Source: Dimorphilus gyrociliatus
Lineage: Eukaryota > Animalia > Annelida
Length of the DNA: 64,000 nt
Assembly: GCA_904063045.1 (NCBI GenBank)
Contig: CAJFCJ010000004.1
Span: 1,915,713 to 1,979,712, forward strand
Reading direction: 5' to 3'
The notes under the pieces were generated by a model that was not told where the DNA came from, did not search any database, and saw only the letters and a program-made list of their open reading frames with translations. The translations under genes and the position numbers were made by a program. Below are positions 33,148 through 51,130 of this stretch, in pieces. Numbering within the stretch: position 1 is the first letter of the stretch; each line of letters starts with the position of its first letter.

Positions 33148-33857
33148 GCCACCAGTTAAAGGTGTCAAGACCGACTGAAGAAATCAGGCTGGACGACCAC
33201 AAAAGTAATCATGATAAGAAGAGTAAGCGATTAAACTTGAGTTAACAAGATAAGAAATTTATGCGTGGGTTACGACTCATTGGAATGTTATATAACTTTA
33301 TTGCTAATCAAAATTATCATTTGAGAGTCGTTTTTATGATAAAGTAGATAGCTTATGAAGCAAAATTCTTTACAATTTTTAGTAAGCCTATATTTAATCT
33401 ATTTTATATTTCAAATTCATACAATAAATAATATAGTTACATAATTTGTCATAAAATTGATATTTAACCGCTTATACATTAATGTTTTAATAGGGTCTTA
33501 TAAAATGTTAACGTCCTCAATGTTGAACTGACACTCACAATTAATACAATTTAACAATTTATAGGCTGTTGAACGAATATCAATTCGTTTTATGCCATTT
33601 ACATGAATTTAACCATAAGTAAAATATGAAAACATATGGCAATCAAGAAATATTTAATATTCATTATTCAATTTGCCTGAATAGTGTCTAATTAAAAACT
33701 GAAAACTTAAAAGCATAGTCATTATAAGACGCTTTTATGATGCGTTGAAATATTAATCAACTTAAAACATTACTTAAGTTTATGAATAATTAAGGGAAAA
33801 GGCAGCAACACATTGCATTTTCATTTTAATATCGTAAGGATAGGAGGAAGAGGCAAT

Positions 33858-35556
33858 ATGGTAGACAACCCTAACTTTCGAGTGAGAGAAGCATTCGCTG
33901 AAGATCGTTTAGAATCAAATATAAAAAGTTCAGGTATAAAGAAAATTGAAGGATGCTCGGGATGCAAGAAATGCGTATCTTTTGTTTGTTGTCACAAGAA
34001 CGAAATATTGTGCAATAATAAGGAGGCATTAATCTCAAAAAATTTTTCCTTCCTATTAAACCTTTCACAAATTGGAGGTTTATACTTTCCTGGTATCTAC
34101 GTTCGAGATAGCAAAGATAAAATCAAGCTTAAATGGACACTGTCAAGGATTTATTGTTATACTATATCCGCAATTATATTCTTGTGTTGCTTCAAAGTAT
34201 GGTTACTTTTTGGATTGATTGATGGTAATTTCAATATATATCAAATTATGACCATCCTAACTATATCATGGTATACATTGATTGTTACGGAAAATATAAG
34301 TATAGTTAGGGGATTTACGTTGTATAGAGGATTTTCCAAATTTTGTTATGTTTGGAAAGAAATATTTGATAACAGTGCAGAATGTCCACATTATCTAAAA
34401 GAGTTTCAAAATATTAAACGTATGGATAAAATTATAACAGTAATCTGTATCTTAGGATTCGTTATAAATACATGTTTCGTGGGTTATCAAACATATTTAA
34501 CAAATTCAATGGATATGTTAGCGTATCCTTTTAAAGTATCCAATTTATCGAAATCATTAACCTTCACTATAGTATTTTTTGGTGGAATTTCCTGGGTTAT
34601 ACCAATTGGATTCCATTTTATTATTTGTTATATTGTTTACAAGTCATTTGTTATAATAAATGAACAAACGAAAGATTCAATCAAACATGAGTTAGCTGAA
34701 AACTTTGCCACAACATTGGAAGTACTTAGGCAAAGGTACGAGAAATGTTGTGATCTCGTTGAAGCAGCCGACTCGATGATCTGTTTATTGAATGCAACTA
34801 GTTTTGTATCTAACATTTTAAACTCGTGTATAACGTTATACATTATGATTTACGACAAAACTGTTATATCAACGAGTACTATAGCAAGACTCGGTTTATA
34901 CTTCTGGCTAATTACAGCTTTGGGAACACTAATAATTATGTCAGTATCAGCAGCAATTGTTCATGAATCCGTAAGTTTTTAATCAGATAAAGTCAATTTT
35001 TACAATTCAATTTTATTATACTTGAAATATTTTCTTTTAACATAATTACGAAATAACAAAAATATAAAATAACCTTCTATTGACCTTAATATCTGGTTGT
35101 CATATCTCTGTTTTTTTGCGTCGTCTTCATTTAAAAAACAAGGCTCACGAATTGACATTTATATTAAGAGATATCAACTTGAATAAACTTGATATTCAAT
35201 CCCATATGAATGTAAGTTATCAGTGTTTTATTATAATACTGAAAAAGAAAAGCCTTAATATTAAAAATCAACATTCTTTTCAACAGTTATCTTTCTTTAT
35301 GCATAAATTAAATGGAACAAAGATTGGACTGACGGCTTTTAAACTATTCATTATAGATAAAGAAACGATAATGACGGTAAGTTCAAAGAAAAACTGCTTT
35401 TATAGAAAACTTAAGGATAATTTGTATACAATAATATTTTCTCTATTGATTTAGATATTTGGCGCGATGATGACATATTTTGTTGTTTTAATTCAATTTA
35501 AACCAACTACTACAAAAACATGTGTATTTAACGGCACATCAATACTAATTAATTAG
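33858..35556 (+). CDS. Gustatory-receptor-like (GRL, 7tm_7 superfamily) chemoreceptor, 457 aa
   Basis: Exons 33858-34970, 35143-35211, 35287-35376 and 35455-35556, with multiple TM segments. C-terminal signature TYFVVLIQF (TY-x5-QF) preceded by KIGLTAFKLFIIDK. Three phase-0 introns near the 3' end, as is typical of the GR superfamily. Confidence 0.9.
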
Positions 35557-35809: not shown

Positions 35810-37930
35810 TCAACTTGGTCTTGGAAATGTAAGGCTAAGAGAAGCTATGATTAGGACAAAGTATAATATAAAAAAGAATCTGTCCAGCATAGTAGCTATC
35901 CTCTGCCAAGCTTTCTTAGCTTCCTGTGTCATATTATTGGCTATAATTTTTTCACTTTCTTTTGATTCCATTTGCGCCAGCATCCTTTTTAAGTCTGCTA
36001 TTTGTTTTTCAAAATCGGACAGATGTCGCTTTGAATCGCATGTATACATTCTTCTTTCGCTATATGATCCATGTAATTCAAAAGTACTATCTATCGATTC
36101 CAATTCTATTTCGACGTTCTCATCACAGATTTCAGTATTTCTCTCTTTCCTATAGCGTCGCTTGTCCAATTTATGTTTTTTGCACAATAAGCAAACTATA
36201 CAATTTAAGCTAATCTACAATAAAGAAAAAAATGAAACATTTTATCATCTTTTGCAATCAAAATAAAGATTATATAGAGAGGAAATACTTAATTAACTTC
36301 TATAAAGTCTACATAAAACTTTGCAGTAAGTCTAATAGAATTAATATTGTTTAACTTACCGCATTTAGCCACTTTGGTGGCTTTTTACCATCGGCTCCAC
36401 CTCTATAAATGTTTACAACTAGAGAAGATAGAACAATGGCCAACATGATTATAACAACATTAAAGCAATAGTATAAGCCTATTAGTAAGATAAATATCAT
36501 TAGTTGGACAGTTATAAATAAATTAAGCGGAGTAAAGTATACCCAATTTAGGAATAGAACCAGCAGTCGGGGGAGCAGCCTCCACTAAAATGAGCAACAA
36601 AACCATAAAACTTGCAAATATACTCATCGCTGTAAGGTAATTTTCAATTATTAATTTGATATAACTTTGAGAAAATATTAGTTTAGTAAAAATTAATAAC
36701 CTAACGAAGTTCTATCAGGTCTATCAGGAGGAAGCCAAAAGACAACTAATGTTAAACATGCCAAAAAGATGCATGGAAGTGTTAATATATAGGTAGAAAA
36801 GACTATTCGTCTTTTCATGTTTAAATAGAAAACTACAATGGAAAATTTTTTTGTTTTCTCATTTCCTTTAACCTCTTTTTCTGCGTGAACTTCGTAAATA
36901 TCCCATACTGAGCCTTCCTTAAAGTCTGACTGATAAGTACTAAGATCAATACCCTCTTTAGTCATCATTTTCAAATCTATTTGATCATTTGTATAAGTCC
37001 AAGATCCAAACCACATATGGCAACTCTGATTGTCAAAAGGGAAATTGGTGACATCAACACTACAGGATGACTTGAAAACTGTATGTGGATACCACATAAC
37101 TCTACCATTATAGTTAATAACTGCCAAAGCATCTCTAGCAACAGTTTCAACACTTGCTCTAGTGACAAAGTAAATCACAAATTGAAAAGTAAATATTCGC
37201 AAGTAAGCTACTTACGTATTATATAGCATAATATCAGGTATCCATATTAAGTCGGCCGATAATCGAATAGTAATTATTCCATCATAATCCTTTGGATCCC
37301 ATCTTAAATATTCATCTTTCCAAGCCTTTAATATTTTAAATATGGCTCATTGATAATATTATCACTGTTAGTGTCTAAAAGAATGTAGTTAAAACTTACG
37401 TATCTTGTCCACATGCTCATTGTAAGAATTTTATCCTTTTCATTTAAATCCATCTGAATTAATCCTAAAGAAAAAAGAACGACGGAAACTGTTGACATAT
37501 TTCTGACGGGTCTTCCCAATTTACCATATTTGTTATATTCGCTAAGAAGATTTGAAAGCAATCTTTTCTCAGCCGAGATGTGAGAACTAGTTAAATATAA
37601 TTTATACAATTTATTTTCTAGTAAATGAGAGATTAATGTTTTTTCTTTAACATTTATTCAACTGTAGCGATAAAAGCGTTTACTATATAATAATATACTA
37701 AACATTTAAAAATTGATTTATAGTTATAGGTATAGTTCGAAATAGAGCTAATACCGCAATAAATATATTGATGTATATATATATATATATATATGTATAA
37801 ATAGATAAATCGTTTCCCACCTATTCATGATATTTTCCATCTGAGCGGTTTCGCTTAAGTAAAAGACATGTAGATAGTTTACAAAGAGAAGATATACACT
37901 TAAAAACTCTGAAAACTTAGTGAGAGTCAT
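35810..37930 (-). CDS. Atypical nicotinic acetylcholine receptor-like Cys-loop subunit 1 (non-alpha); first exon tentative
   Basis: WIPDIMLYN, Cys-loop [22 protein letters not shown]1 [21 protein letters not shown]2 [22 protein letters not shown]4 [13 protein letters not shown]. No vicinal Cys in loop C. Confidence 0.92.
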
Positions 37931-38486
37931 TCTATAAGACAAAAACAATATAATAGTTTACTGTATAATGCTGCTATCTCCACTGATGTTGATAGTTTAT
38001 TTTACCCGATACTACACTAGAGGGGGTTGTATTTTATAATTAATAACTATTTTTATGAAGATTTTTTTAAATATATCACTTTTTCTCAATTAATTATTTT
38101 GTTTTGAATGAAAAGTGAAAAAACTAATATATGAACAATTGAATTATTTAATTAATTAAAGAAAAAATATGGAAAATATTGACAAAAAACGCACACAAAG
38201 TAGAAACAAAGTAACAATCACGAATTATAATTGAAAAAATACTATACTATAAACGTTTATTGTACACATTTATGCGGTTTGGGTATGCAAAATAGTATTC
38301 TTATTTATCGATTGATGATAATTTATCTATTCAATTGAATTTAAAATTTATATCAATTCAAGAATAATACAAAACAAGGCGCCAATATGCCGTGTATATA
38401 CAATATATATATATTTTTATATATCTTCTTTTTATGTATATAAAGTCAAAATTTTAAAAAAGAGTAACAAAATGACAATATAGATA

Positions 38487-41290
38487 TTAAAGTGGTCTTG
38501 GAAAAAACCATATAAGAAACACGATAATAATAACCAAATAGACGCAAAAGAAGAATCTATCAAGTATTTTTGCAAAATACTTCCAAATATCGATAAGAAA
38601 CTTTCTGTACTGTTTCTTGTCTTCAATCTCCAATTGACGTAGTTCAACTTTTTTCAAAATGAAATTTATTTCTTTTAATTTTAATAATAGTATAGAATCT
38701 TTGTCGCCGTAGCTATAATAGTTTCCCTCAGAGGTTGCCAATCTCTTCTTTAACACTTTAAGCTTTCTTTTCAATTTGTACATTTTCTCTGTTTTGAAAA
38801 TTTTAGCTACTATTTTTATCAACTGTAAGGAATAATATTATTTAAGTAAGAAGGTTCTTTTTGTTAATAGAATGACAATTACCAAAAAAATAATTTTATG
38901 GGGAGTAGTACCAGTTTCTCCAAGTTTTGATATGTTGATTATCACTGTTGACAGGATGATGGCCAAAATTATGAGAATCAAAATGAAGATGTAGTAAAAT
39001 CCTGATGAAAGAAATATTTCTCCTGTCAATTAGCATTATTTATCATAACTTAAAATTACTAGCCTAATTTTGGAGTGGAGCTAGCTGAAGGTGGAGCCGT
39101 TTCAACCAACATCAGTAGGAGAAATAAAAAACTAGCGAAAAGACTCATTGCTAACATGGTTCTATCAGGTCTGCTAGGAGGTAGGCAGAACACAGTTAGA
39201 GTTAAGGATGATAATATAATGCAAGGAACAATTAAGAGACCGTTCATGAATGTCAATCGTCTCTTTAATTCAAATCGAAAGGTAATAATTGAATATGTAG
39301 GAATTTTTCCTCCACCATGTTCTTTCCTGTCAACCTCTGTAGAACTCACTTCCCAAACGGAGTATTTCTCTAGCTGGCTGACATCTAAACCCTGCTTTCC
39401 TAGAATTCTAAAGTCAATTTCATAAATTGGGTGTGTCCAAGAACCAAACCACAGATTGCAAGTTTGAACATCAAATGGATAATTCGTAACAGTCATGCTA
39501 CAAGTTGATTTATAAACACTTTTTTCAAACCAAGTTACATCTCCGTTATAGTTTATTATTACTGGTGCATTTGATATTTCATTTTCGGCCGTTGCCCTAT
39601 GTAATAAAAAGGATTAAACTATTCGTAAAGATTTAATAAATTTGATTATAAGAATTCATATTAAAACATGATTGTCTCAATCCTTAGATAATGATTAATA
39701 TCATGGGTGTTCAAATATAGAGAGTTTGCCTATAGATTATTTGCAAAAGAGTAAATATTGCAAATATATAAATTTATATATTATAGATATAAAAATACAG
39801 TTCAAGTTCGACTATTAGATATTCATTTCTGATAGACAAGATATGGATTTCATAGACAACACTGTTTATTTATAGTCAGCCTTAATCTTAAGGCTAAGCA
39901 TAGTCGAAGAATTGGTATAAAATATCTTACTCAATATGATTTGAAATATATCGTCTATTCTTCTAAACGATAAATGATTAATATTTGATACATATTCGCT
40001 CCTCAGTGTATGATAGTGGCACTAGGACATAGACTATATGCTTTTTTATAATTTAAAATGTTCTAGTTTAATCAGATTGAATCATAGACGAAAAAAATAA
40101 AACTTGACATTTATAATAAAACTTCTGAATAGATTTTCAGAAATATATGATAATAAAGAGTCGATAAGATAAGAATACTTATATATAAGTAAGCTTACTT
40201 ATGTATAACTTTTGAAAACATATCTATTATAATAATTACGTGTTATATAACATTATGTCTGGTCTCCAAATCATATTCATCGGCAGTCGAATATTGTTAA
40301 CACTTTCATAATCTTTTGGATTCCATGTCATATATTCATCCCTCCATTTCTTTTGTAGAATTTTAATATAAGTTTAATATTTATGGTAAATAACATCTTT
40401 AAATTTTGTAAACTTACCATTTGATAATTTGCTGTAGCTGTAAAAACTTTATCTCGTTCGTCTAAATCAACTGCTACTATGCTAAGGGAGAAATAGACTA
40501 TTAGACTATTTGTGCTGTTTCTAATAGGTCTGCATTTAGGACCAAATTTTTCGTACGACTTCAAGAGTCTTTCTATCAACTGTCTTTCGCTCGATTTTCT
40601 CCCTCTGTTGAAAAACTTGTGTATTATCAGTCGAGTAAAACTAGACGTTTATTTAAGACGAATGTAATATAATGCCATCTATCGTTGAATAGAATTTTTC
40701 ATTAAGTCTAACATCTATTTCAATATAAAATAGCAATAAATAACCATTCCTCTAACACTAAGATTGTTCTATTAGACTTTATCGTACCACTGATTTTTTT
40801 TTTTCCAATAACATTTGTAATCTCAAGGGTAAAGTTATTTTTTGGCGATTTAGGGGAATTCTCTTCCTTCTAAATGAGATTTAAAACCTATAGGAAGCTC
40901 GTTTTATTTTTTATCGCAATACAATGTGTATATATTAAACTATGCATATGCTCTAAACCTTATAACTTGCTAGCAAATTATAACAATTAGCATATAGCAA
41001 TATTCAGCCATGTGTAAAGAAGCAATGTTCAGAGAATAGCTTGCATATAAATATATTAATATAATATTATAGTTATTTTAATAAATACATTAATATAAAA
41101 TTCATTTGAAATAGAATACGAAAACTACGAAAGACATTATGTCACTTTCACTTTAGACTTGATATAAAAACAAGAAAAAATAATTCAAATATTTGACTTA
41201 CTTTAACGATAAATTATCAACCGATAAATTGATAATTTCATCAAAATTTACCAAAAATATCATAAAAAGTAGTAGGAAACTTATATTCAT
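38487..41290 (-). CDS. Atypical nAChR-like Cys-loop subunit 2 (non-alpha)
   Basis: Signal exon MNISFLLLFMIFLVNF (41202-41290, phase 2), WRPDIMLYN, CSMTVTNYPFDVQTC, FGSWTH, M2 RTMLAMSLFASFLFLLLMLVE, M4 DRFFFCVYLVIII, ending FPRPL*. Confidence 0.9.
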
Positions 41291-42918
41291 ATTTGTAAAG
41301 AGTATGTATATACAGTATGTACATATATTTATATATATATACAGTATATATATATATATATATATTATATATACATACTTTGTAGGGTACCGTTGTGAAT
41401 TCGTAAAATGACTATAAATTTATTTATCTATTTTCAGCTATATTAAAATAACTGATATGAAATGTCAGCTTATTTCAAAAAACCAATCATTTTTCTTTTA
41501 TTTTTTCATAAAAATTGCACATGTTACCCATTTTTTTAATGATATAGATAAAATTTTTATTGTTTGCGGTATGTTATCTTGTTTTAACAGAATAAAAAGT
41601 TAAACAGATTTAACATGTCAGAAACAGCTGTGTGTTTTCTTATTTTTAAAATGAGCATAAAGAAAAGGAAAATAGAAGAAGATCTTAGATAAAGATGAAA
41701 ATAAAAAATATACCAATAAAATTGGATTAGAGTTAACTATAGAGAAAGTAACGATTGCTAAAGATAGGAATAAGACTGCATAAGAGAATGAAAAGGAAAA
41801 TAAAGATGGACAATTTCCTATTTATCACGCAATTCAGGATTTTGCGTTTGCAGTGTGTTTCCTGTGTAGACTTTGTAAATATTATATTCAATAGAAAAAA
41901 CATTTCTATAGGTTTCTAACAAAATTTAGTTTTTTCTTTTAATTTAAATGATGTTAATTACACTCTATTAATAAATAATTATAAGTTAATAAACGAAAAT
42001 TTCAATAGATATTCAATTCTTAATATTTTATTCTTTGATAGAAAATGAATTATAAATAATTAAAACAATAAAAGAATACAATAACGCATTTAGTGTATCT
42101 TTGAATGCCATTCAAAAATATATAATAAAATAGCGATCGAAGACATTTTTGTTTACATCTATTCAGTTTTTCAACTGTCCTATTCAGGACAATCAATGCC
42201 CTTCACTTTTGAAAGTCGTGGGAAATTTAATTATTATTGTTCATAAATAGCAAATATACTATTAAGCCCTTCTTTTAAATGTAGTCTTATTATTAAATTA
42301 TTAGCCATTATAGACTATATTTTAAAGCGTTAGTTAAGCATGGAAAACTTCCAGACTTCAAATATTTATAGATCGTTACTGTTTTATCATCGTTGAGTAT
42401 CTATTTGATATTTTTCCTCTTTTCTTCTTTATTTTTATTTTAGTGAAGGAATTTGGGGAATACGTTTGCAACGTTCCCCCGCCTCCCTACAACTTTGATA
42501 CTCTCTTTGATTTTTCAATTGGGAACGCTATAAATCACAGTTTCTTGAAATTTTGGCTTGTGCTACTTTTAATCTTTTAACCCTGTCCTTAATAAAAGTG
42601 CTTTCAGGATGTAATATAATAGGTATCAACCTATAGAACATTCAGAAATTTTAGTTTTTTAAAAGGAATTAAATAACGCAAAGTATCCTTGAAAAGACTA
42701 TTAAAAAGATCATCTTAAATACAAAGTATTTCTCCAGTCACTTTATCAGTAAGTGAATAAATGTATACGTGTTTTTTAATAGAAGTACTTGGCTTTGTAG
42801 TATAAGGAAAATGGACGAAAACAATAATAGATATGACAGTTTTTTGGTCTCTTTAACTTGATTCCAAATTTTATAAAAATGAAGCTGAAATTTAAATAAT
42901 TTATTGTTAATTTTCCTA

Positions 42919-44532
42919 CTATACTGGTCTTGGAAATAATAGACTTAGAGATGTTATAATTAAAACAAGGTACAATATAAAGAAGAATCTATCTAGAACT
43001 GTTGCAATTCTTTGCCATGATTTTTTTGCCATTGTTTTCTCTTTTTCAAATCTATTCCTTTCTTCTAATTTTTGTTCAAACCGCAATATAATTCTGCGTA
43101 AATCATATAATTGTTTTTCAAAATCCGACAGGTGTCGCCTATCAACATCAAAATCATGTAATTCGCTAATATCGTTAAACAGTTCAATTCTTTCATGAGA
43201 TTTCTCATTGGTTGCCGAGTAGATATTTCTTGTTGTGCATTTGCCTCTCATACACATAGCTCTTGCTAGGCATCCTAATGTTATCTGAAATGTAATAAAG
43301 TATGTATACACGTGACTATGATCACTTAAAAATCTTCAAATGTTATATTCATACAGAATTTGTTAACGAACCAGATTTAGCCATTTAGGTGGATATTGAC
43401 ATTCGTTACCGCCTCTGTTAATGTTAACGACCAAGGATGAAAGTATGATAGAAAACATGATAATAACAACGTTGAAGCAGTAGTAAACACCTGAATAAAC
43501 AAAAACAGATTTCTATTTAAGATGCTATTTGAATAAACAAGAGAAAGAAAGAAAAACCCTTATAGAACATAAGAGCACTTTGTATCTTTTATGCCTTGAT
43601 ATCTATATTTTTTTGTAATATGACTTCTAAATCTTCCTATTCAATGGTAGCTATAATTTATCTCGTTTCACCTATTCTATTTTGAAAGTAGATATACAAG
43701 CCTCCAGGGTAAAATATTTACCTAAATTTGGTATAGAACCAGCAGTGGGGGGTGCAGCCTCTACCAAGATCAAAAGAAGAACCATAAAGCTTCCAAAGAT
43801 GCTCATAGCTGCATAAATACTGCATTATATATATATAGTTCAAGTGCAAATCTTAGCTATTATATTAATTAGTAACCTACTTACCAAGCGATGTCCTGTC
43901 TGGTCTATCAGGTGGTAACCAGAATACAACTAAAGTTAGACAGGCCAAAAAGACGCAAGGTAGTGTTAGAATATAGCTTGAAAAGACCATCTTCCTTCTC
44001 ATATACAATTCAAAGGTTACAATAGTAAATTTGGGTACATTATCTTTTCCTTTGACTTGTCTCTCAGCATGAACTTTATAAATATCCCAGCCTGATCCAT
44101 CTTTAAAATCTGATTGAAATGTGCTTAGATCAATTCCGTTTTCTGTTAGCATAGTTAGATTAATTTGATCTGAGGGATGTGTCCAAGATCCAAACCACAT
44201 ATGACAACTCTGATTATCGAAGGGGAAGTTTGTTACGTCGAGACTACAAGATGATCTAAAGATCGTATGTGGGAACCATGAAACAGAACCGTCGTAACGA
44301 ATGACTGCAAGGGCCTGACGGGCTACGCTATCGACATCGGCACTGTAATAGAGGCTTTCGTGAATAAAATTCATTTACAGTTGAAATCGATAGAATTCTG
44401 AAATAGGTGCTTTATAATTTAGTTCAACTGGACGTTTAAACGCTGGAAACGGATTGACATTCAATTAAATTACAGATATTTATACCCTATGCAATAAGCT
44501 ATGTCTCAAAATTCTCTCCCTCTCTCCCTCTC

Positions 44533-44597
<65 letters not shown>

Positions 44598-47500
44598 ATA
44601 TGAGAAAGTTTATATATAATACATTGTAAATATTTGTTAAAAATATTAATTTATAATAAACTTATTTAACACTTAAAGGAGATATTATAACTTTGATTGA
44701 TATGACTAAGACATTTGATTTGGAGAACAAAAACTCATAATATTCAGGTAACAAAGTTATTGATCAAAAAGAATATTTAACAAATTCTGTCCTAACATAA
44801 AATTACTGAAGATTAACTCGTTCTATAAATATTGATGAGTCAGTGATATTATAAATAACGTTTTATATATATATATATAATTTATATATACTGTATATAT
44901 CGCATTTAATTTCTTATAAGTGCAATCTAAGTTTGACAGAACAGTTTGCAAAAAAAGTAACCTTTAGAATTGATGACTTTTCAACTCAGAAGTGTCCTTA
45001 TTGAGAAGGATATATGTATGAAAATATTATATTAAATAGAAAGAGTTTTATTCTATATCCATATCTCTACAGGAAATATGAACGTTTCATACGTATTGTA
45101 CAATTGGAAAAAGCTTCTAATGTCGATTGACTTGCCTTGACAACTAATCCTAAATATCTTCCGTAACTCTCCTTTGTCCCTTGCGCTACTACCTCCCATT
45201 CTTTCTTATTCTCTTAAAACTGCTCTGTAAGTTCCACATTATGATAACACTTGCTATAATTCAAGAAATCAATGATACAATCGCGATACGATTAAAACGT
45301 ACATCTTTCTTTCTAATTTTACATTCCCACGAATTTAAAGAAATAGAAGCAGATAAACGGATTTTATTTTATTTTCTACTAATTAGTTGCAGCAGAAGAG
45401 ATAATTAGCCCTAATTAAATGGTGAAGTCTGATTTGATCATATGAAGGAAACAATTTAATAGAAAGTGTTAAAAAACGAAATTATTGACAACAGTTTCTT
45501 CTTTTTCTGACATACCAGGTTTTATTTTAATAAATATAATTAAATTGGTTTTTCTACTTTATCTTTAAAAAAAAAAGGTAAAGCGTTTCTTTTGTTGAAA
45601 GAAAACAGAATTTTTAGTTTGAAATTTTTAATTTAACAATTGTTGCTAATAGCTTAGTCAGATTGATTAATTAATTAATTACATCGATCGTTGATTGTTG
45701 AGGATAAGCTCTTTTGAGGGGAAATCTCATGACAATAATATATTTTTTTTTTACCTTAAAACTGTTAAAATAATATCATGGATGAAGAGAGAGAAAAAAA
45801 GAGAAAAAGAGAATGGAGAAGATAAAGAATTTTATTTAACATCTCAAAGTTTGTAAAGTTTTCTGGATTTGTTCGTCTGTTGTATTTACAACTTGAAATT
45901 AAAGATATAAAATGAACGTTGGAATGTTAATTTATAATAATTGATTTACATTAGAATAATAAAGAATAAATAATAAGTAAGTCAACCAAAATTAAATTTG
46001 CAGTAGTTCTGTAAAATATCACGATAAGCTATTTAGAAAATAATCAAAAGGAAATTAACATTAATAGATTTAAAAACTATGTTTTCTTAAAATTGGAACA
46101 ACTTGGAACAGGATATCAAGAAGATAATCATAAGTAAAGCCCTTTCGTAAATACGCAATTTCCTGACACTTAAGAGAAGATTCTGATTAATTGACATGTT
46201 CTACATTTCTACAGGAATTACAATTTCTTTTTAAACTATGAAGAAATATTTATGGAACTTTATTTAACTGATTTGCTTAACAAATCAAAAAATTTTTAGT
46301 TGAAAAAAATAGTAACTATCTATAGAAAATATAGATTCATTGAATTTAAAGCCGTTCATTCGAGATATATCGAATATATTCTCAATAATCTCAACTAGAG
46401 ACGATAAAAACTCTATGGCAACTGGGAGAAGGAAACAGTAAGAGGAGGAGAAAAGGAAAGGAACAAAAAATAAGCCTACTCTTAAGATTTTCTTTCCATA
46501 TCGCTGCTTAACGTTATTAAATTCCTTATCCAGAACATTGTAATTAGCTTTTAAGTTATATATGAAATTTAAACTAGCTATATAGAAAGGAAAAAGGGAA
46601 AGTTATTATTCGTAGGTGAGACTACGCGCATTTCCCAAACTGCATTACACCCAAAAAACAGAAAAAGACCAAATTATTGATTCATTCTTGTGCTTTCTCT
46701 TTTAATACTTGTATACAGTATATTTAATGAGAAGACAAGACATAGAAATAAAAACTTTACCATGCAGAAATTTCTAAAAATAATTACAGAACATAGACAA
46801 ATTAAATATTAGTAATAACCTAATAATAATAGTTAATAATCACTGATCGTTTGATGTTATTAATTCTCTGTCTACTAATCTTCTATTCTATTATATGTTT
46901 GTTTTTATTATAGCTTATATTTAAAATATTTGTATTAAATTTCATAGATATTTTCGGCATAGAGTATTAATATTTTACCGTTTTGTGTCCAATTGATAAA
47001 GAGTAGTATTGATAAGAAAATTTTTTAACATATAGTCAGTCTTCTGTTTTTGGTCTAGTTGTATTATTTATTCGCAGCATAATTCATAATTCCTTATGGG
47101 AAACTTAATGCAAACATTACAACTATTCTAACGCTTAATCTAATATAACAGTAACACTTTTAGAAATATGTTTATGTACGCAATTATTCTGATCAGATAA
47201 TCTTGTTATAGTTCCGTGTAGTAAAGAGAGCATAAACTTTTTGTGGTCATTTAACGATGAAGGCAATTAGTTTCCTTTCATCTTGTCGTCTTTCATTTCT
47301 TATGAAAAACTATACTTTTGAATATGTTAATACTTTTCAAAATGAAATAAAGTATATATTACAAAAAAGGAACAAGGGAAAATATAGTGTCTCACAATAA
47401 TACATACGTGTTGTATAACATAATATCGGGTTTCCATATGGAATCGGCTGATAATCTGATTGTAGTCACTCCACCGTAGTCCTTAGGGTTCCAGGTCAAA

Positions 47501-48775
47501 TATTCGTCGTTCCATACCTAATAGTTTTCTTCTTCGTTATTACTTAGTAATGAACTTAAGAAAACTCCATTACTCACATAGCGAGTCCACATGCTCATCG
47601 TTAAGACTTTATCTTTTTCGTTAAGGTCCATTTGAATAAGACCAAGCGAGAAGCTGACATTTGAAACGGTCGAAATATTTCTCACAGGTCTGCCCGACTT
47701 GCCCCACTTCTTATATTCAGTCATCAAGTCATTAATTAAAAGCTTTTCGAATGAAACATTTCCCGAACTAGATTTAAAAAATGAATAATAAACAATTTAC
47801 AGCAACAAACGTTAGAATTAAAAATTAATAAAAGAAAAAGGTCAAGTGTTTATTGGAGAGGAATTTTGAATGTTTAACAAGGTAAAAGGATCGCCTAGAG
47901 ATACTAAAGACGATATTACATGATCTGAGGTGTACTACTTTTCGTAAAACTAGAGATATACGGATAATTAGAAGATAAAAGCTCATTACGACTTCCTTCA
48001 AAAAGGCTTATTTTGGAACTCTAAGGATTGTTTTTAAATAGAATACTTATTAAACTATGATAATTTATAGAATATGATATAGATTTCATTAAATACCTTT
48101 ACAAAAATAATAATAATAATAATAGACAATAGATTTGTAATATAGTCCTATCCTTAATATTTTCACACATCTAACTAGTTCTTAAGAAATAACAGTCGCA
48201 AATAGATTCTTGGATAGAAAAATTTGTTCGACTATTACATTTACTGGGAACACGTCAAAATTGTAAAAGTAGTACAGTAAGGTTCCAGTAAGCCTCTAAA
48301 AGTTTCTTTCTATGATAAGTTTATTAGGTTTTTTTCATCAATGAAACCGCGTCTTTTTGGCACACGTACCTACAACGACATTGGAAGCGACTGCTAATCA
48401 GAAGTAAGACCTTGAAGACTAAGACAAATGAGAAATTGTTGACTATTCCAAAATATGTTGCTATAAACAGGGATTTTACTAATAAATTCTAGCATTATAA
48501 CCGGAAAATGATACATTTCCGCTTTATATAGGGTGGTAATAAACTTTTCTCATTTCTATCTTCTTTTTTTCTAATGGAGACGTCTATCCTTTAAAGGAAT
48601 GGAACTTATTTTATATGAAAGAGTTCAAAAATTATTGGTTTCTTTGGAAACCATCTAATTGTATACTGATTTAAATATTATACTATTACATTAGACTTTT
48701 ATAAATAGTTACTTACCAGTTAATAAGCCTGACGATTTCAATTAAGATTGGAAGCAAAGTATAGAAAATAGTCAT
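42919..48775 (-). CDS. Atypical nAChR-like Cys-loop subunit 3 (non-alpha), close paralogue of subunit 1
   Basis: Signal exon [19 protein letters not shown] (ATG 48775), [31 protein letters not shown]2 [21 protein letters not shown], ending FPRPV*. Contains an intron of about 3 kb (approx. 44350-47400). Confidence 0.92.
44513..44592. repeat. Compound (CT)n(TA)n microsatellite in the long intron of nAChR-like 3
   Basis: Read directly from the sequence. Confidence 0.95.
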
Positions 48776-51130
48776 TTTTTTCCCTTTACATATTTGTTCG
48801 CTTATGCTTAAAAATATGAAAAAAGTAGTATAAAGATTTATTCCTTCACTTTTCTTCTTTCTGTCTTCTATCCCTATTTTTCTTTTTATTCTCTTCCTAC
48901 ACTCTCTCCTTACCATTTATCTCATGTCATATAGAATCAAACGTATAAGAAACACTAGACGTCTCTCCCTTATCTCTTGTTCATATAACTAGAGTTCGCT
49001 CTTTATATATAAAACGCTTCAGTCTAATTTCTATCGATTTTTTTACATATTATCGCTCACTAGCTTTTGACGTTTAAAATTACATAGATAGTAATTGAAA
49101 CCAGGATAAAATTTCAAGATTTATTATATTTATCAGAATTTTCAACATGTCATATTTTTAAAAGTTGTCTATCTTAAAGTATACAGAGAAGGAAGGTATA
49201 TGATATATACATACATTAATATATACTGTATATACAATATATACAATATATAGTATAAATTTATATATATATATATATATATATATAAAGACTGTGACTG
49301 TAAGTGTTTATTTGATATTTGTATGGGAAATTAAAGACAAAATAATAAAACAGCTATATTAAAGAAGTAACACTAATTCTACTTGTATTTTAGTATTATC
49401 TTGTTCAAGCTTGTGTTTAATAACATATTTCATTCATCACAGTTAATCTGTACAAAATTGCAATTGGAACAAAGTTTTTGGAAGACAAGGAAGGAAATTC
49501 TTAGTTTTGCATATGTTAGCTAATCTATTATGAGTATAGATTATAAAACTGATATAAAATAATACTAAAATCTTTCTAGAATGAGGAATGGGGGAAAATT
49601 TCATAAGAAGTTTTGCAGATTCTATAAATTTTAACCAACGATTGGCTTACACTGAACTAGTTGAAATATTTAAGAAGAGAAATCATCTGAATGGCAGCCA
49701 CGTGACAATCAGGCAAACTCAACAAAGAAAACTTTACAGTAAATAATACAATTCGCATCCGTGATGAAAATAATTCATTCTTGATAGCTCAGATGGCTTA
49801 CACTACAATTGGTAGAACCTCAAATAGGAGAAAGTAATTCTCTTGTAGAGGCAGTCTGGAGTAGGTAGTACTAAGAAGCAGAGACAATTTCTCTCTAAGG
49901 GAAAACATCTAGGCTTTATTAAAACTAGAAATGAAGATGGAAGTTAAAACTTATACTCTAAGAGACCATTTTATCCTTTAGTTTATCCACCCTGAGGTGA
50001 AAATGCTATCTTAGTGTAAGATGAGGCACCAATATATCGGGATTTTAAAAACAAAACTGTCTCTGGAGGGTGACGTAATTACACTACTGGACTGATCAGC
50101 ATATTCTCTCTAATTTTTAATGTAACTGTTTTGCAGCCAGAAATTTATAAGAGATTTGGAGCAAAGCCTAGAAATCAAACACTGCAATCTTTCGTAATCC
50201 TTTCAGAATGGAAAGAAATTAGTCTATATCTTATTGCTAATTTTATCAATTTTCTTAGCAACTGATTGCTTATAAAATTAACTAGAAAACAACAAGAAAG
50301 CATGTGATAAACAGTTTTTTCCTTATTTCTATAAAAGAAAATTTCTTCATCTCGACTATAGACAATTATAAGAACTACAAAAAATTTTCTTCTATCTTTC
50401 AGTATATTTACTGTCTATAATATTCGACTATTACATCATCAATCTTTTTTATACTATTAATACAGATAATGTTTGTATGTCTATAATTTAGTCGTTGATT
50501 GAAGGCACAGACACATATACTATATATACAGACAGTATACTGTATATATTATTAAAACTAGCACAACAGGTCTTAAGAGCAAAGAAGAAAGTGAAGGATA
50601 TCTATAAAGAGAGAGAGAGAATGAGAGCGAGAAAGAGAGCAAGAGATGTAGAGAGAGAGAGAGATAGATAGAGAGATGGGTAGAAAGATATATTTTTTAA
50701 TAAAACTAAAATAGGAAAGGAAAGCGCGTTTAAAGGGACATTTTTTGGCGATAAAGCTATAAGTAAAAATATTTATTGTTTGTAATCTATAATTGGCACA
50801 AAGTGGCTTTAGAATCATTAGAGAATATAAGCAAATTTCATGCGTACATCAAACTTGTATCATTCATCCTAAGAGCGCTTTAAACAGGGTATTTAATCAT
50901 TTAGGACTGCATTAAGAACGACGATTGAGTAATTCATTGAAATAATTATTTGGGTTAGAGAAGAAAATAATAAAAAAGGAATAAATTTTATATTTAATCC
51001 AGACTTTATTACACTTTTCATTACAAATAAAGAAAGTATATGCATAAATTGACCATCGTTTGTTCTATATTTAAAAGATTCCCTCCTCAATAGAGTATGC
51101 ATCTAATATATACAGTATATATTAATATAT

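Follow-up and report, generated by a model that had tools for sequence, protein, structure and literature searches.

Three tandem genes of the tiny marine annelid Dimorphilus gyrociliatus encode intact nicotinic-type Cys-loop receptor subunits in which the M2 helix lacks the leucine at position 9' and follows a selectivity filter that pairs the -2' Pro of anion channels with the -1' acid of cation channels. The genes lie on the minus strand at ~35.8-48.9 kb of the 64,000-nucleotide stretch analysed here (hereafter the window; assembly GCA_904063045.1, contig CAJFCJ010000004.1, positions 1,915,713 to 1,979,712 of the forward strand), the DNA of which is AT-rich (~30% G+C), and are numbered 1 to 3 by rising coordinate. 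An earlier note on this DNA had reported that 9' is Ala in genes 1 and 2 and Gly in gene 3, and that all three have Phe at 8' and the triplet Pro-Asp-Arg at -2'/-1'/0'; both splicing and alignments confirm these residues. The 9' Leu is the textbook hydrophobic gate in ligand-gated ion channels with a pentameric build (pLGICs), and its replacement is known almost wholly from point mutants. Here we place the trio in a wider group, which we name the R-P-D-R family, and propose, with a probability of roughly 0.55, that it represents a conserved non-alpha annelid family of pore-forming subunits with an outwardly displaced gate, a weakly cation-preferring or poorly selective filter and an accessory role in heteromers.

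Pore residues and M2 register

The splice junctions of all three genes were taken directly from the DNA, and the M2 strings of the earlier note are exactly those encoded by the spliced genes:

36580..36731, minus strand: gene 1, M2 together with the M1-M2 loop (-6' to 20'), interrupted in codon 4' by a phase-1 intron; -2' Pro (36719-36717), -1' Asp (36716-36714), 0' Arg (36713-36711), 8' Phe (36618-36616) and 9' Ala (GCA; 36615-36613), followed by 13' Val, 16' Leu and 20' Glu (36582-36580)
39101..39181, minus strand: gene 2, M2 together with the M1-M2 loop, both within a single exon that has no intron at codon 4'; -2' Pro (39169-39167), -1' Asp, 0' Arg, 8' Phe (39139-39137), 9' Ala (GCT; 39136-39134), 13' Phe (39124-39122) and 20' Glu (39103-39101)
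43759..43915, minus strand: gene 3, M2 together with the M1-M2 loop, with a phase-1 intron in codon 4' as in gene 1; -2' Pro (43903-43901), -1' Asp, 0' Arg, 8' Phe (43797-43795) and 9' Gly (GGA; 43794-43792), followed by 13' Val, 16' Leu and 20' Glu (43761-43759)

An alignment shift that would bring Leu or Phe into 9', raised as a concern in the earlier note, was not found by any of three concordant approaches. In a phmmer comparison with all Protein Data Bank (PDB) chains, M1, M2 and the M2-M3 loop of gene 2 align without gaps to human alpha6 and beta2, which puts the triplet Pro-Asp-Arg at -2' to 0' and Phe, Ala and Glu at 8', 9' and 20', respectively; M1 to M3 is likewise gapless in a MAFFT L-INS-i alignment of family members with anion-type nicotinic, canonical alpha/beta and alpha5/beta3 subunits. 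The AlphaFold2 model of gene 3, made from a 60-sequence alignment (mean predicted local distance difference test score, pLDDT, 85.4), has a beta-sandwich extracellular domain and helices at residues 287-308, 315-337, 347-378 and 437-504, the second of which is M2 and spans -1' to 21'; compared with solved chains of the muscle, alpha4beta2, alpha7 and 5-HT3A receptors it gives VIA-align Z 26-28.5. An off-by-one register with Phe or Leu at 9' was rejected, given that M1 ends as far from the Pro of the M2-M3 loop as it does in canonical subunits, with no indel, and that the predicted helix limits agree.

By simple helical-wheel geometry, positions 2', 6', 9', 13', 16' and 20' (Ser, Ser, Ala/Gly, Val, Leu and Glu) should fall within ~80 degrees of one another, with Phe 8' displaced by ~120 degrees from these pore-facing positions; protrusion of the 8' side chain into the pore is thus unlikely on such a model. 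The canonical cation-selective signature (Gly-Glu-Lys/Arg at -2' to 0' together with Leu 9') is absent from genes 1-3, which retain of it only the negative charge at -1'. Outside the R-P-D-R family and the Pro-Ala-Lys group described below, 9' Leu is found in 96/117 M2 stretches, and a single sequence among the 117 carries Ala, Ser or Gly at 9', itself a member of the R-P-D-R family. The small 9' residue of the trio is not a matter of chance.

The R-P-D-R family and its chloride-channel relatives

The family was collected by an exhaustive HMMER search, in which the M1-M2 exon of gene 2 was run against 1.84 billion representatives, and by two word-based searches. It forms a tight group of 28 M2 stretches, 25 of them distinct and the window genes included, throughout which Asp at -1', Arg at 0' and Phe at 8' never vary (28/28 each). 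Position 9' is held by Ala (13), Ser (12) or Gly (3) and never by Leu; further along the helix, 10' is Ser in 26/28, 13' is Val (18), Leu (8) or Phe (2), 16' is Leu in 27/28, 17' is Ile in 25/28 and 20' is Glu in 21/28. At -2', Pro is present in 22/28 stretches and Thr, Ala, His or Met in the rest, and Arg is frequent at -3', where it adjoins a conserved acid at -4'. One further member confirmed by the tree has Lys at 0' and Gly at 9'. A divergent relative, a JGI metagenome protein from a single contig (P0033), reads Ala-Asp-Arg at -2' to 0' and would place Arg, an odd residue for the gate in being charged, at 9'.

All named members are annelid, from Dimorphilus, Capitella and Paralvinella, in both a whole-length word search and a search seeded by M1-M3. 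The latter, run with M1-M3 words over 5.8 billion clusters, returned 188 candidates and 18 hits, with no named non-annelid among them. Dimorphilus has at least 7 loci (the window trio plus DgyrCDS2007-2009, 8695, 11285 and 12454), Capitella teleta 5 members and Paralvinella palmiformis 2, with further members in GCA_013332895.1, a Tara metagenome scaffold and Logan runs. Restriction to annelids is the best reading of these sequence matches, not proof. On another contig of the D. gyrociliatus genome, DgyrCDS2007-2009 (P0170, P0151 and P0003) are three differing annotated products of one paralogous locus, and one of them (448 amino acids) passes from the end of the extracellular domain into M2 with no M1, as either an annotation artefact or an exon-skipping isoform.

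Sequence comparison identifies genes 1-3 as tandem paralogues, with genes 1 and 3 forming an old duplicate pair and gene 2 an older, faster-evolving branch. Genes 1 and 3 are 69% identical, with proportions of synonymous and nonsynonymous differences (pS and pN) of 0.79 and 0.21 overall; their synonymous sites are saturated, and pN ranges from 0.10 in M1-M3 to 0.45 in the intracellular loop. Gene 2 and its orthologue in contig L004 differ by pS 0.76 and pN 0.23. Because saturated synonymous change stands beside low pN, lowest in M1-M3, we regard the genes as old and constrained, the pore region most of all; the family is under strong purifying selection. The earlier note had drawn selection on a distinct pore design from the pattern shared by the three paralogues. 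Selection is borne out by the retention of the same M2 in Dimorphilus, Capitella and Paralvinella and by the M1-M3 pN of 0.10, but the agreement within the trio is inheritance and not independent evidence, since all 28 family stretches carry a small 9' residue.

The ligand-binding region sets the family apart in a second way. In the MAFFT alignment the loop-C Cys pair and the Tyr preceding it (the Tyr190 equivalent) are absent from genes 1-3 and from the other family members, whereas the rows for Pro-Ala-Lys and canonical alpha subunits show both; the hallmark of an alpha subunit, a vicinal Cys-Cys (YxCC) at the tip of loop C, is therefore missing from genes 1-3. Loop A Tyr and loop B Trp are kept in the family and loop D Trp in genes 1 and 3 (not in gene 2), and a four-residue insert in the loop F region is family-specific, with gene 2 lacking it. 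On these sequence features the family is classed as non-alpha nicotinic-type Cys-loop subunits.

The next-best matches after the family itself make up a large group whose -2' to 0' residues are Pro-Ala-Lys and whose 8'-9' pair is Phe-Val. A search seeded by the M1-M3 region of a Capitella member retrieved 246 proteins, among them a "nicotinic acetylcholine receptor subunit type B" of Biomphalaria, an "acetylcholine-gated chloride channel subunit-1" of Cryptocotyle and many proteins of Schistosoma, Fasciola and Clonorchis, with others from gastropods, bivalves, cephalopods, a nemertean, a bryozoan, a brachiopod, a leech, an orthonectid and a rotifer. D. gyrociliatus itself contributes DgyrCDS7081 and DgyrCDS7085, both with the loop-C Cys pair; the public model of the latter (P0229) has six extra residues inside M2 and looks like a mis-called splice site. 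A Pro-Ala motif defines the nicotinic chloride-channel clade, whose chloride selectivity has been described (PMC4055736), and judging by its sequences the Pro-Ala-Lys set is that clade; the link to the anion-selective nicotinic acetylcholine receptors (nAChRs) of Lymnaea rests on the same paper and on the database name "nAChR subunit type B". In the R-P-D-R family the Pro of this motif is present and its Ala is replaced by Asp in 28/28 stretches. A reading of 112 Pro-Ala-Lys proteins by regular expression, which may have mis-registered a few, gives 9' Val for 91 of them and 9' Leu for 18, with 8' Phe in 109.

Maximum-likelihood analysis separates the family and the Pro-Ala-Lys clade together from canonical nAChRs with a support of 100 in the Shimodaira-Hasegawa-like approximate likelihood ratio test (SH-aLRT), both with the M2 columns included and after removal of columns -6' to 24'. 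The family core is supported at 99 and the Pro-Ala-Lys rows as a group of their own at 92, and the approximately unbiased (AU) test does not reject a tree in which the family joins the annelid Pro-Ala-Lys genes (p 0.12); all trees are "quick" searches with SH-aLRT support only. By sequence, then, the nearest relative of the family is the pan-spiralian Pro-Ala-Lys clade. The acetylcholine (ACh)-gated chloride channels of that clade (Lymnaea type B; Schistosoma SmACC-1/-2) share with the family -2' Pro, 8' Phe, the lack of 9' Leu, a Leu-rich 14'-18' segment and an acidic 20', and the open reading frame (ORF) fragments of both groups end at codon 3'/4', which suggests a shared intron position. 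They differ in having Ala (or Ser) at -1', Lys at 0', Val at 9', mostly a loop-C Cys pair and a distribution across many spiralian phyla, whereas in the R-P-D-R family -1' and 0' are Asp and Arg, 9' is one of Ala, Ser and Gly, the Cys pair is lacking and the named members come from annelids alone. Because the sister clade is itself already without 9' Leu, the loss of this residue is probably older than the R-P-D-R family, and the departure from 9' Leu would be a clade-wide trait, fluke ACh-gated chloride channels included. Two orders of events are possible: a Pro-containing ancestor whose acid was kept in one lineage and lost in the other, or an anion-type ancestor re-acidified in annelids.

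Selectivity, gating and subunit role

The earlier note had described the filter as a hybrid of anion-type and cation-type features. This holds for the juxtaposition of -2' Pro (anion type) with -1' Asp (cation type) but not for the remaining residues, namely 0' Arg, hydrophobic 13' and acidic 20', which do not discriminate: 0' Arg is found in 22/96 canonical cation-type stretches, and the anion-type sister clade, too, as a rule has a hydrophobic residue at 13' and an acid at 20'. Nor is 0' Arg shared with the molluscan anion-type subunits, as had been supposed; those carry Lys at this position. Per subunit, the family M1-M2 loop brings together two acids and two bases (-4' acid, -3' Arg, -1' Asp and 0' Arg). 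The closest precedent for such a filter is the engineered glycine receptor A-1'E (Pro-Glu-Arg; Keramidas et al. 2002, PMC2233820), which follows the same logic of -2' Pro, acidic -1' and 0' Arg and is weakly cation-preferring (PCl/PNa 0.34); it differs in being a laboratory mutant of an anion channel, with Glu in place of Asp, a 9' Leu and another pore background. By analogy, the Pro-Asp-Arg filter of the family would confer a weak cation preference or poor charge selectivity.

It is conceivable, if improbable, that these are instead anion-selective subunits in which -2' Pro and the Arg residues at -3' and 0' prevail over a salt-bridged -1' Asp, that is, a non-alpha branch of the chloride channels that co-assembles with Pro-Ala-Lys alphas and leaves selectivity unchanged. 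Such a reading accords with the single clade formed by the family and the Pro-Ala-Lys group, within which an annelid-specific origin is compatible with the AU value given above, and with the invariant 0' Arg, the prevalent -2' Pro and the frequent -3' Arg. The glycine receptor mutant speaks against it, however, having been rendered cation-preferring by one acid at -1' with its -2' Pro kept, as does the pattern of conservation in the family: because -1' Asp is invariant while -2' varies (Thr, Ala, His and Met), the acid appears to be the selected feature.

The consequences of the missing 9' leucine can be read in two ways. Under the explanation that we favor, the products of genes 1-3 would be pore-forming subunits of ligand-gated channels in which, without a bulky 9' ring, the hydrophobic barrier moves outward to 13', 16' and 17', where the conserved rings of Val/Leu/Phe, Leu and Ile could form an outer barrier. 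A structural parallel is provided by Alpo4 of Alvinella pompejana (PDB 8bx5 series), likewise an annelid, non-alpha, orphan nicotinic-type receptor, in which the tightest pore constriction lies outward at 16' (PMC10338036); it differs in having 9' Leu, 13' Leu and -1' Glu, belongs to another family without the R-P-D-R signature and ranked 44th among PDB sequence matches to the large exon of gene 2. Natural non-Leu residues at 9' also occur in working receptors, with Val in vertebrate alpha5/beta3 and in the clade that holds ACh-gated chloride channels, although Ala, Ser or Gly at this position is more radical than Val.

Alternatively, a small 9' residue could destabilise the closed state and make these channels constitutively or tonically open, so that they would conduct without agonist, or would respond to it with extreme sensitivity and hardly desensitise. 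Mutants of muscle, alpha7, 5-HT3 and GABA-A receptors in which L9' is replaced by Ser, Thr or Ala gain function and open spontaneously, and this, together with the small 9' residue in 28/28 family stretches, counts in favor of leak-type channels. The leaky or slowly desensitising behavior anticipated in the earlier note would nonetheless be an extrapolation from point mutants of Leu-9' receptors: in alpha7 L247T, muscle L9'S/T and GABA-A L9'S a small or polar residue occupies the same position, but these are single changes in pores optimised for Leu, whereas the family has conserved its small 9' in three annelid genera. Because that residue is conserved in every member examined, alongside Phe at 8' and 11', compensation is likely. 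Set against leakage are also the retention and high conservation of the hydrophobic 13', 16' and 17' rings, the closure of Alpo4 at 16', the agonist-gated chloride channels within a sister clade without 9' Leu, and the cost that a leak-channel family of at least 7 loci would impose on a 74-Mb genome. On balance we think it unlikely that the family consists of leak channels.

As to subunit role, because the family has no alpha-type principal face, its members would most likely act as complementary or accessory subunits in heteromers, for which the alpha-type Pro-Ala-Lys subunit DgyrCDS7081 of the same genome is a candidate partner. In such heteromers they would tune agonist sensitivity, conductance and charge selectivity, as the Val-9' subunits alpha5/beta3 do in vertebrates. 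The latter do not form the principal agonist site either and offer a possible functional analogy of accessory tuning, but they sit among canonical alpha2-6 in the tree, far from the window genes, and carry Gly-Glu-Lys at -2' to 0' and a beta-branched hydrophobic residue at 9'; the tree gives no orthology between them and genes 1-3, whose kinship with them goes no further than the nAChR superfamily.

A different role, to which we assign a low likelihood, is that of orphan homomeric chemoreceptor-type channels for a ligand other than ACh, comparable to octopus chemotactile receptors or Alpo4, with the peculiarities of the pore serving sensory transduction. The loss of the loop-C Cys-Cys and Tyr, the family-specific loop F insert and the lineage-specific expansion in tandem arrays fit this picture, as do the intronless 7tm_7 chemoreceptor-like ORF adjoining the cluster and the discussion of orphan lophotrochozoan receptors of such a kind in PMC10338036. 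Genes 1 and 3 have, however, kept Tyr in loop A and Trp in loops B and D, which is compatible with a complementary ACh face.

Several points weigh against our proposal of gate-shifted accessory subunits. Outward displacement of the gate, the preferred ion and the partner in heteromers are each inferred; the channels may be tonic or leaky, given the spontaneous opening of small-9' point mutants; and the Arg residues at -3' and 0' that flank the Asp could neutralise it and favor anions. With respect to the Pro-Ala-Lys clade, the family is recovered as monophyletic with a support of only 23. Finally, gene 2 depends on a GC splice donor, and its annotated N-terminus is unlike a signal peptide.

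It is important to note how far these pore features have featured in earlier work. D. gyrociliatus sequences were included in the 25-family tree of the 2023 Alpo4 paper, so the genes had already been seen but not characterised. Pore residues are not mentioned in Jiao et al. 2019, nor ligand-gated channels in the D. gyrociliatus genome paper, and neither the R-P-D-R pore nor the absence of 9' Leu from the nicotinic chloride-channel clade is described in Jiao 2019, the Alpo papers, the SmACC paper or the genome paper. The family motif strings returned nothing relevant in a literature text search or in the supplements of the Alpo and genome papers.

A conserved family with natural Ala, Ser or Gly at 9' constitutes a natural experiment on where the gate is located when 9' is small, and its natural Pro-Asp-Arg filter provides a test of charge-selectivity rules derived from mutants. 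In the phylogeny it adjoins the only known nicotinic-type chloride channels, which makes its members candidate partner subunits for annelid cholinergic inhibition; the ACh-gated chloride channels of flukes have been proposed by their describers as possible antiparasitic targets (PMC4055736). More doubtful is the further idea that the R-P-D-R family is a naturally "gate-shifted" lineage, without a bulky 9' residue in any member examined from the three annelid genera, whose Pro-Asp-Arg filter is a surviving intermediate, or a reversal, between the cation-selective Gly-Glu-Lys and the anion-selective Pro-Ala-Lys nicotinic receptors. If that were so, the family would show how pLGICs can close when the 9' ring is missing and by what route nicotinic receptors switched their charge selectivity.

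Gene models and the surrounding locus

The public record of the contig calls three Neur_chan genes with products of 509, 448 and 425 amino acids, which correspond to the following features of the window:

35810..37581, minus strand: gene 1 (DgyrCDS3081), annotated as 425 amino acids from 37498; whole-codon blocks 37498-37400, 37325-37215, 37157-36702, 36630-36541, 36476-36360 and 36214-35813, with the stop to 35810
38487..41263, minus strand: gene 2, annotated as 448 amino acids; exons 41263-41202, 40604-40418, 40349-40240, 39596-39064, 39001-38883 and 38822-38487, the last including the stop
39062..39063, minus strand: non-canonical GC donor of gene 2 after the M2 exon; the exon ends ...TTAG and the intron starts GCTAGT
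42919..48916, minus strand: gene 3 (DgyrCDS3084), 509 amino acids; blocks 48916-48719, 47766-47575, 47514-47407, 44341-43886, 43809-43720, 43488-43372 and 43284-42922, with the stop to 42919

Pfam finds Neur_chan_LBD and Neur_chan_memb in each gene (E 9e-28 and 3e-6 for the large exon of gene 1, with similar values for genes 2 and 3), and both domains are also precomputed for the public proteins P0173 (DgyrCDS3081, 425 amino acids) and P0172 (DgyrCDS3084, 509 amino acids), which map residue for residue onto the window exons of genes 1 and 3, respectively. The Cys-x13-Cys loop with its FPFD motif is readable in all three translations, and C199 and C213 are invariant in the alignment underlying the gene 3 model.

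The public model of gene 1 starts at an internal Met, and conserved in-frame coding runs on upstream in the same exon (37499-37581, minus strand), where it corresponds to the helix preceding the first beta strand; the DgyrCDS3081 annotation is cut short at its N-terminus and its signal-peptide exon is missing. In gene 3, a 3-kb intron precedes the large exon of the extracellular domain.

Gene 2 is the most divergent of the trio; it has lost the loop-D Trp and has Phe at 13' and a short intracellular loop. A 62-nucleotide first exon from 41263 brings it to exactly 448 codons, the length of the public model, and no junction but the one with the GC donor keeps it in frame, in exact agreement with that length. 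A pseudogene was considered for gene 2 and rejected: its exons are all open, the comparison with its orthologue (pN 0.23 vs. pS 0.76) indicates constraint and the 448-amino-acid model matches the junctions. In a related species that orthologue (Logan contig L004, SRR23372228) has a normal GT donor at the corresponding junction (L004:850-870), and its 20' residue is Gly where gene 2 has Glu.

Just downstream of gene 1, at 33813-34982 on the plus strand, lies the intronless ORF of 389 amino acids mentioned above, whose match to Pfam 7tm_7 (insect-type chemosensory/gustatory receptor) is borderline (E 4e-6; 26.7 bits vs. a curated cut-off of 26.6). Microsatellites of the (GA)n and (TA)n type occupy 44530-44600 and 37700-37800 (minus strand), in introns and flanks of genes 3 and 1.

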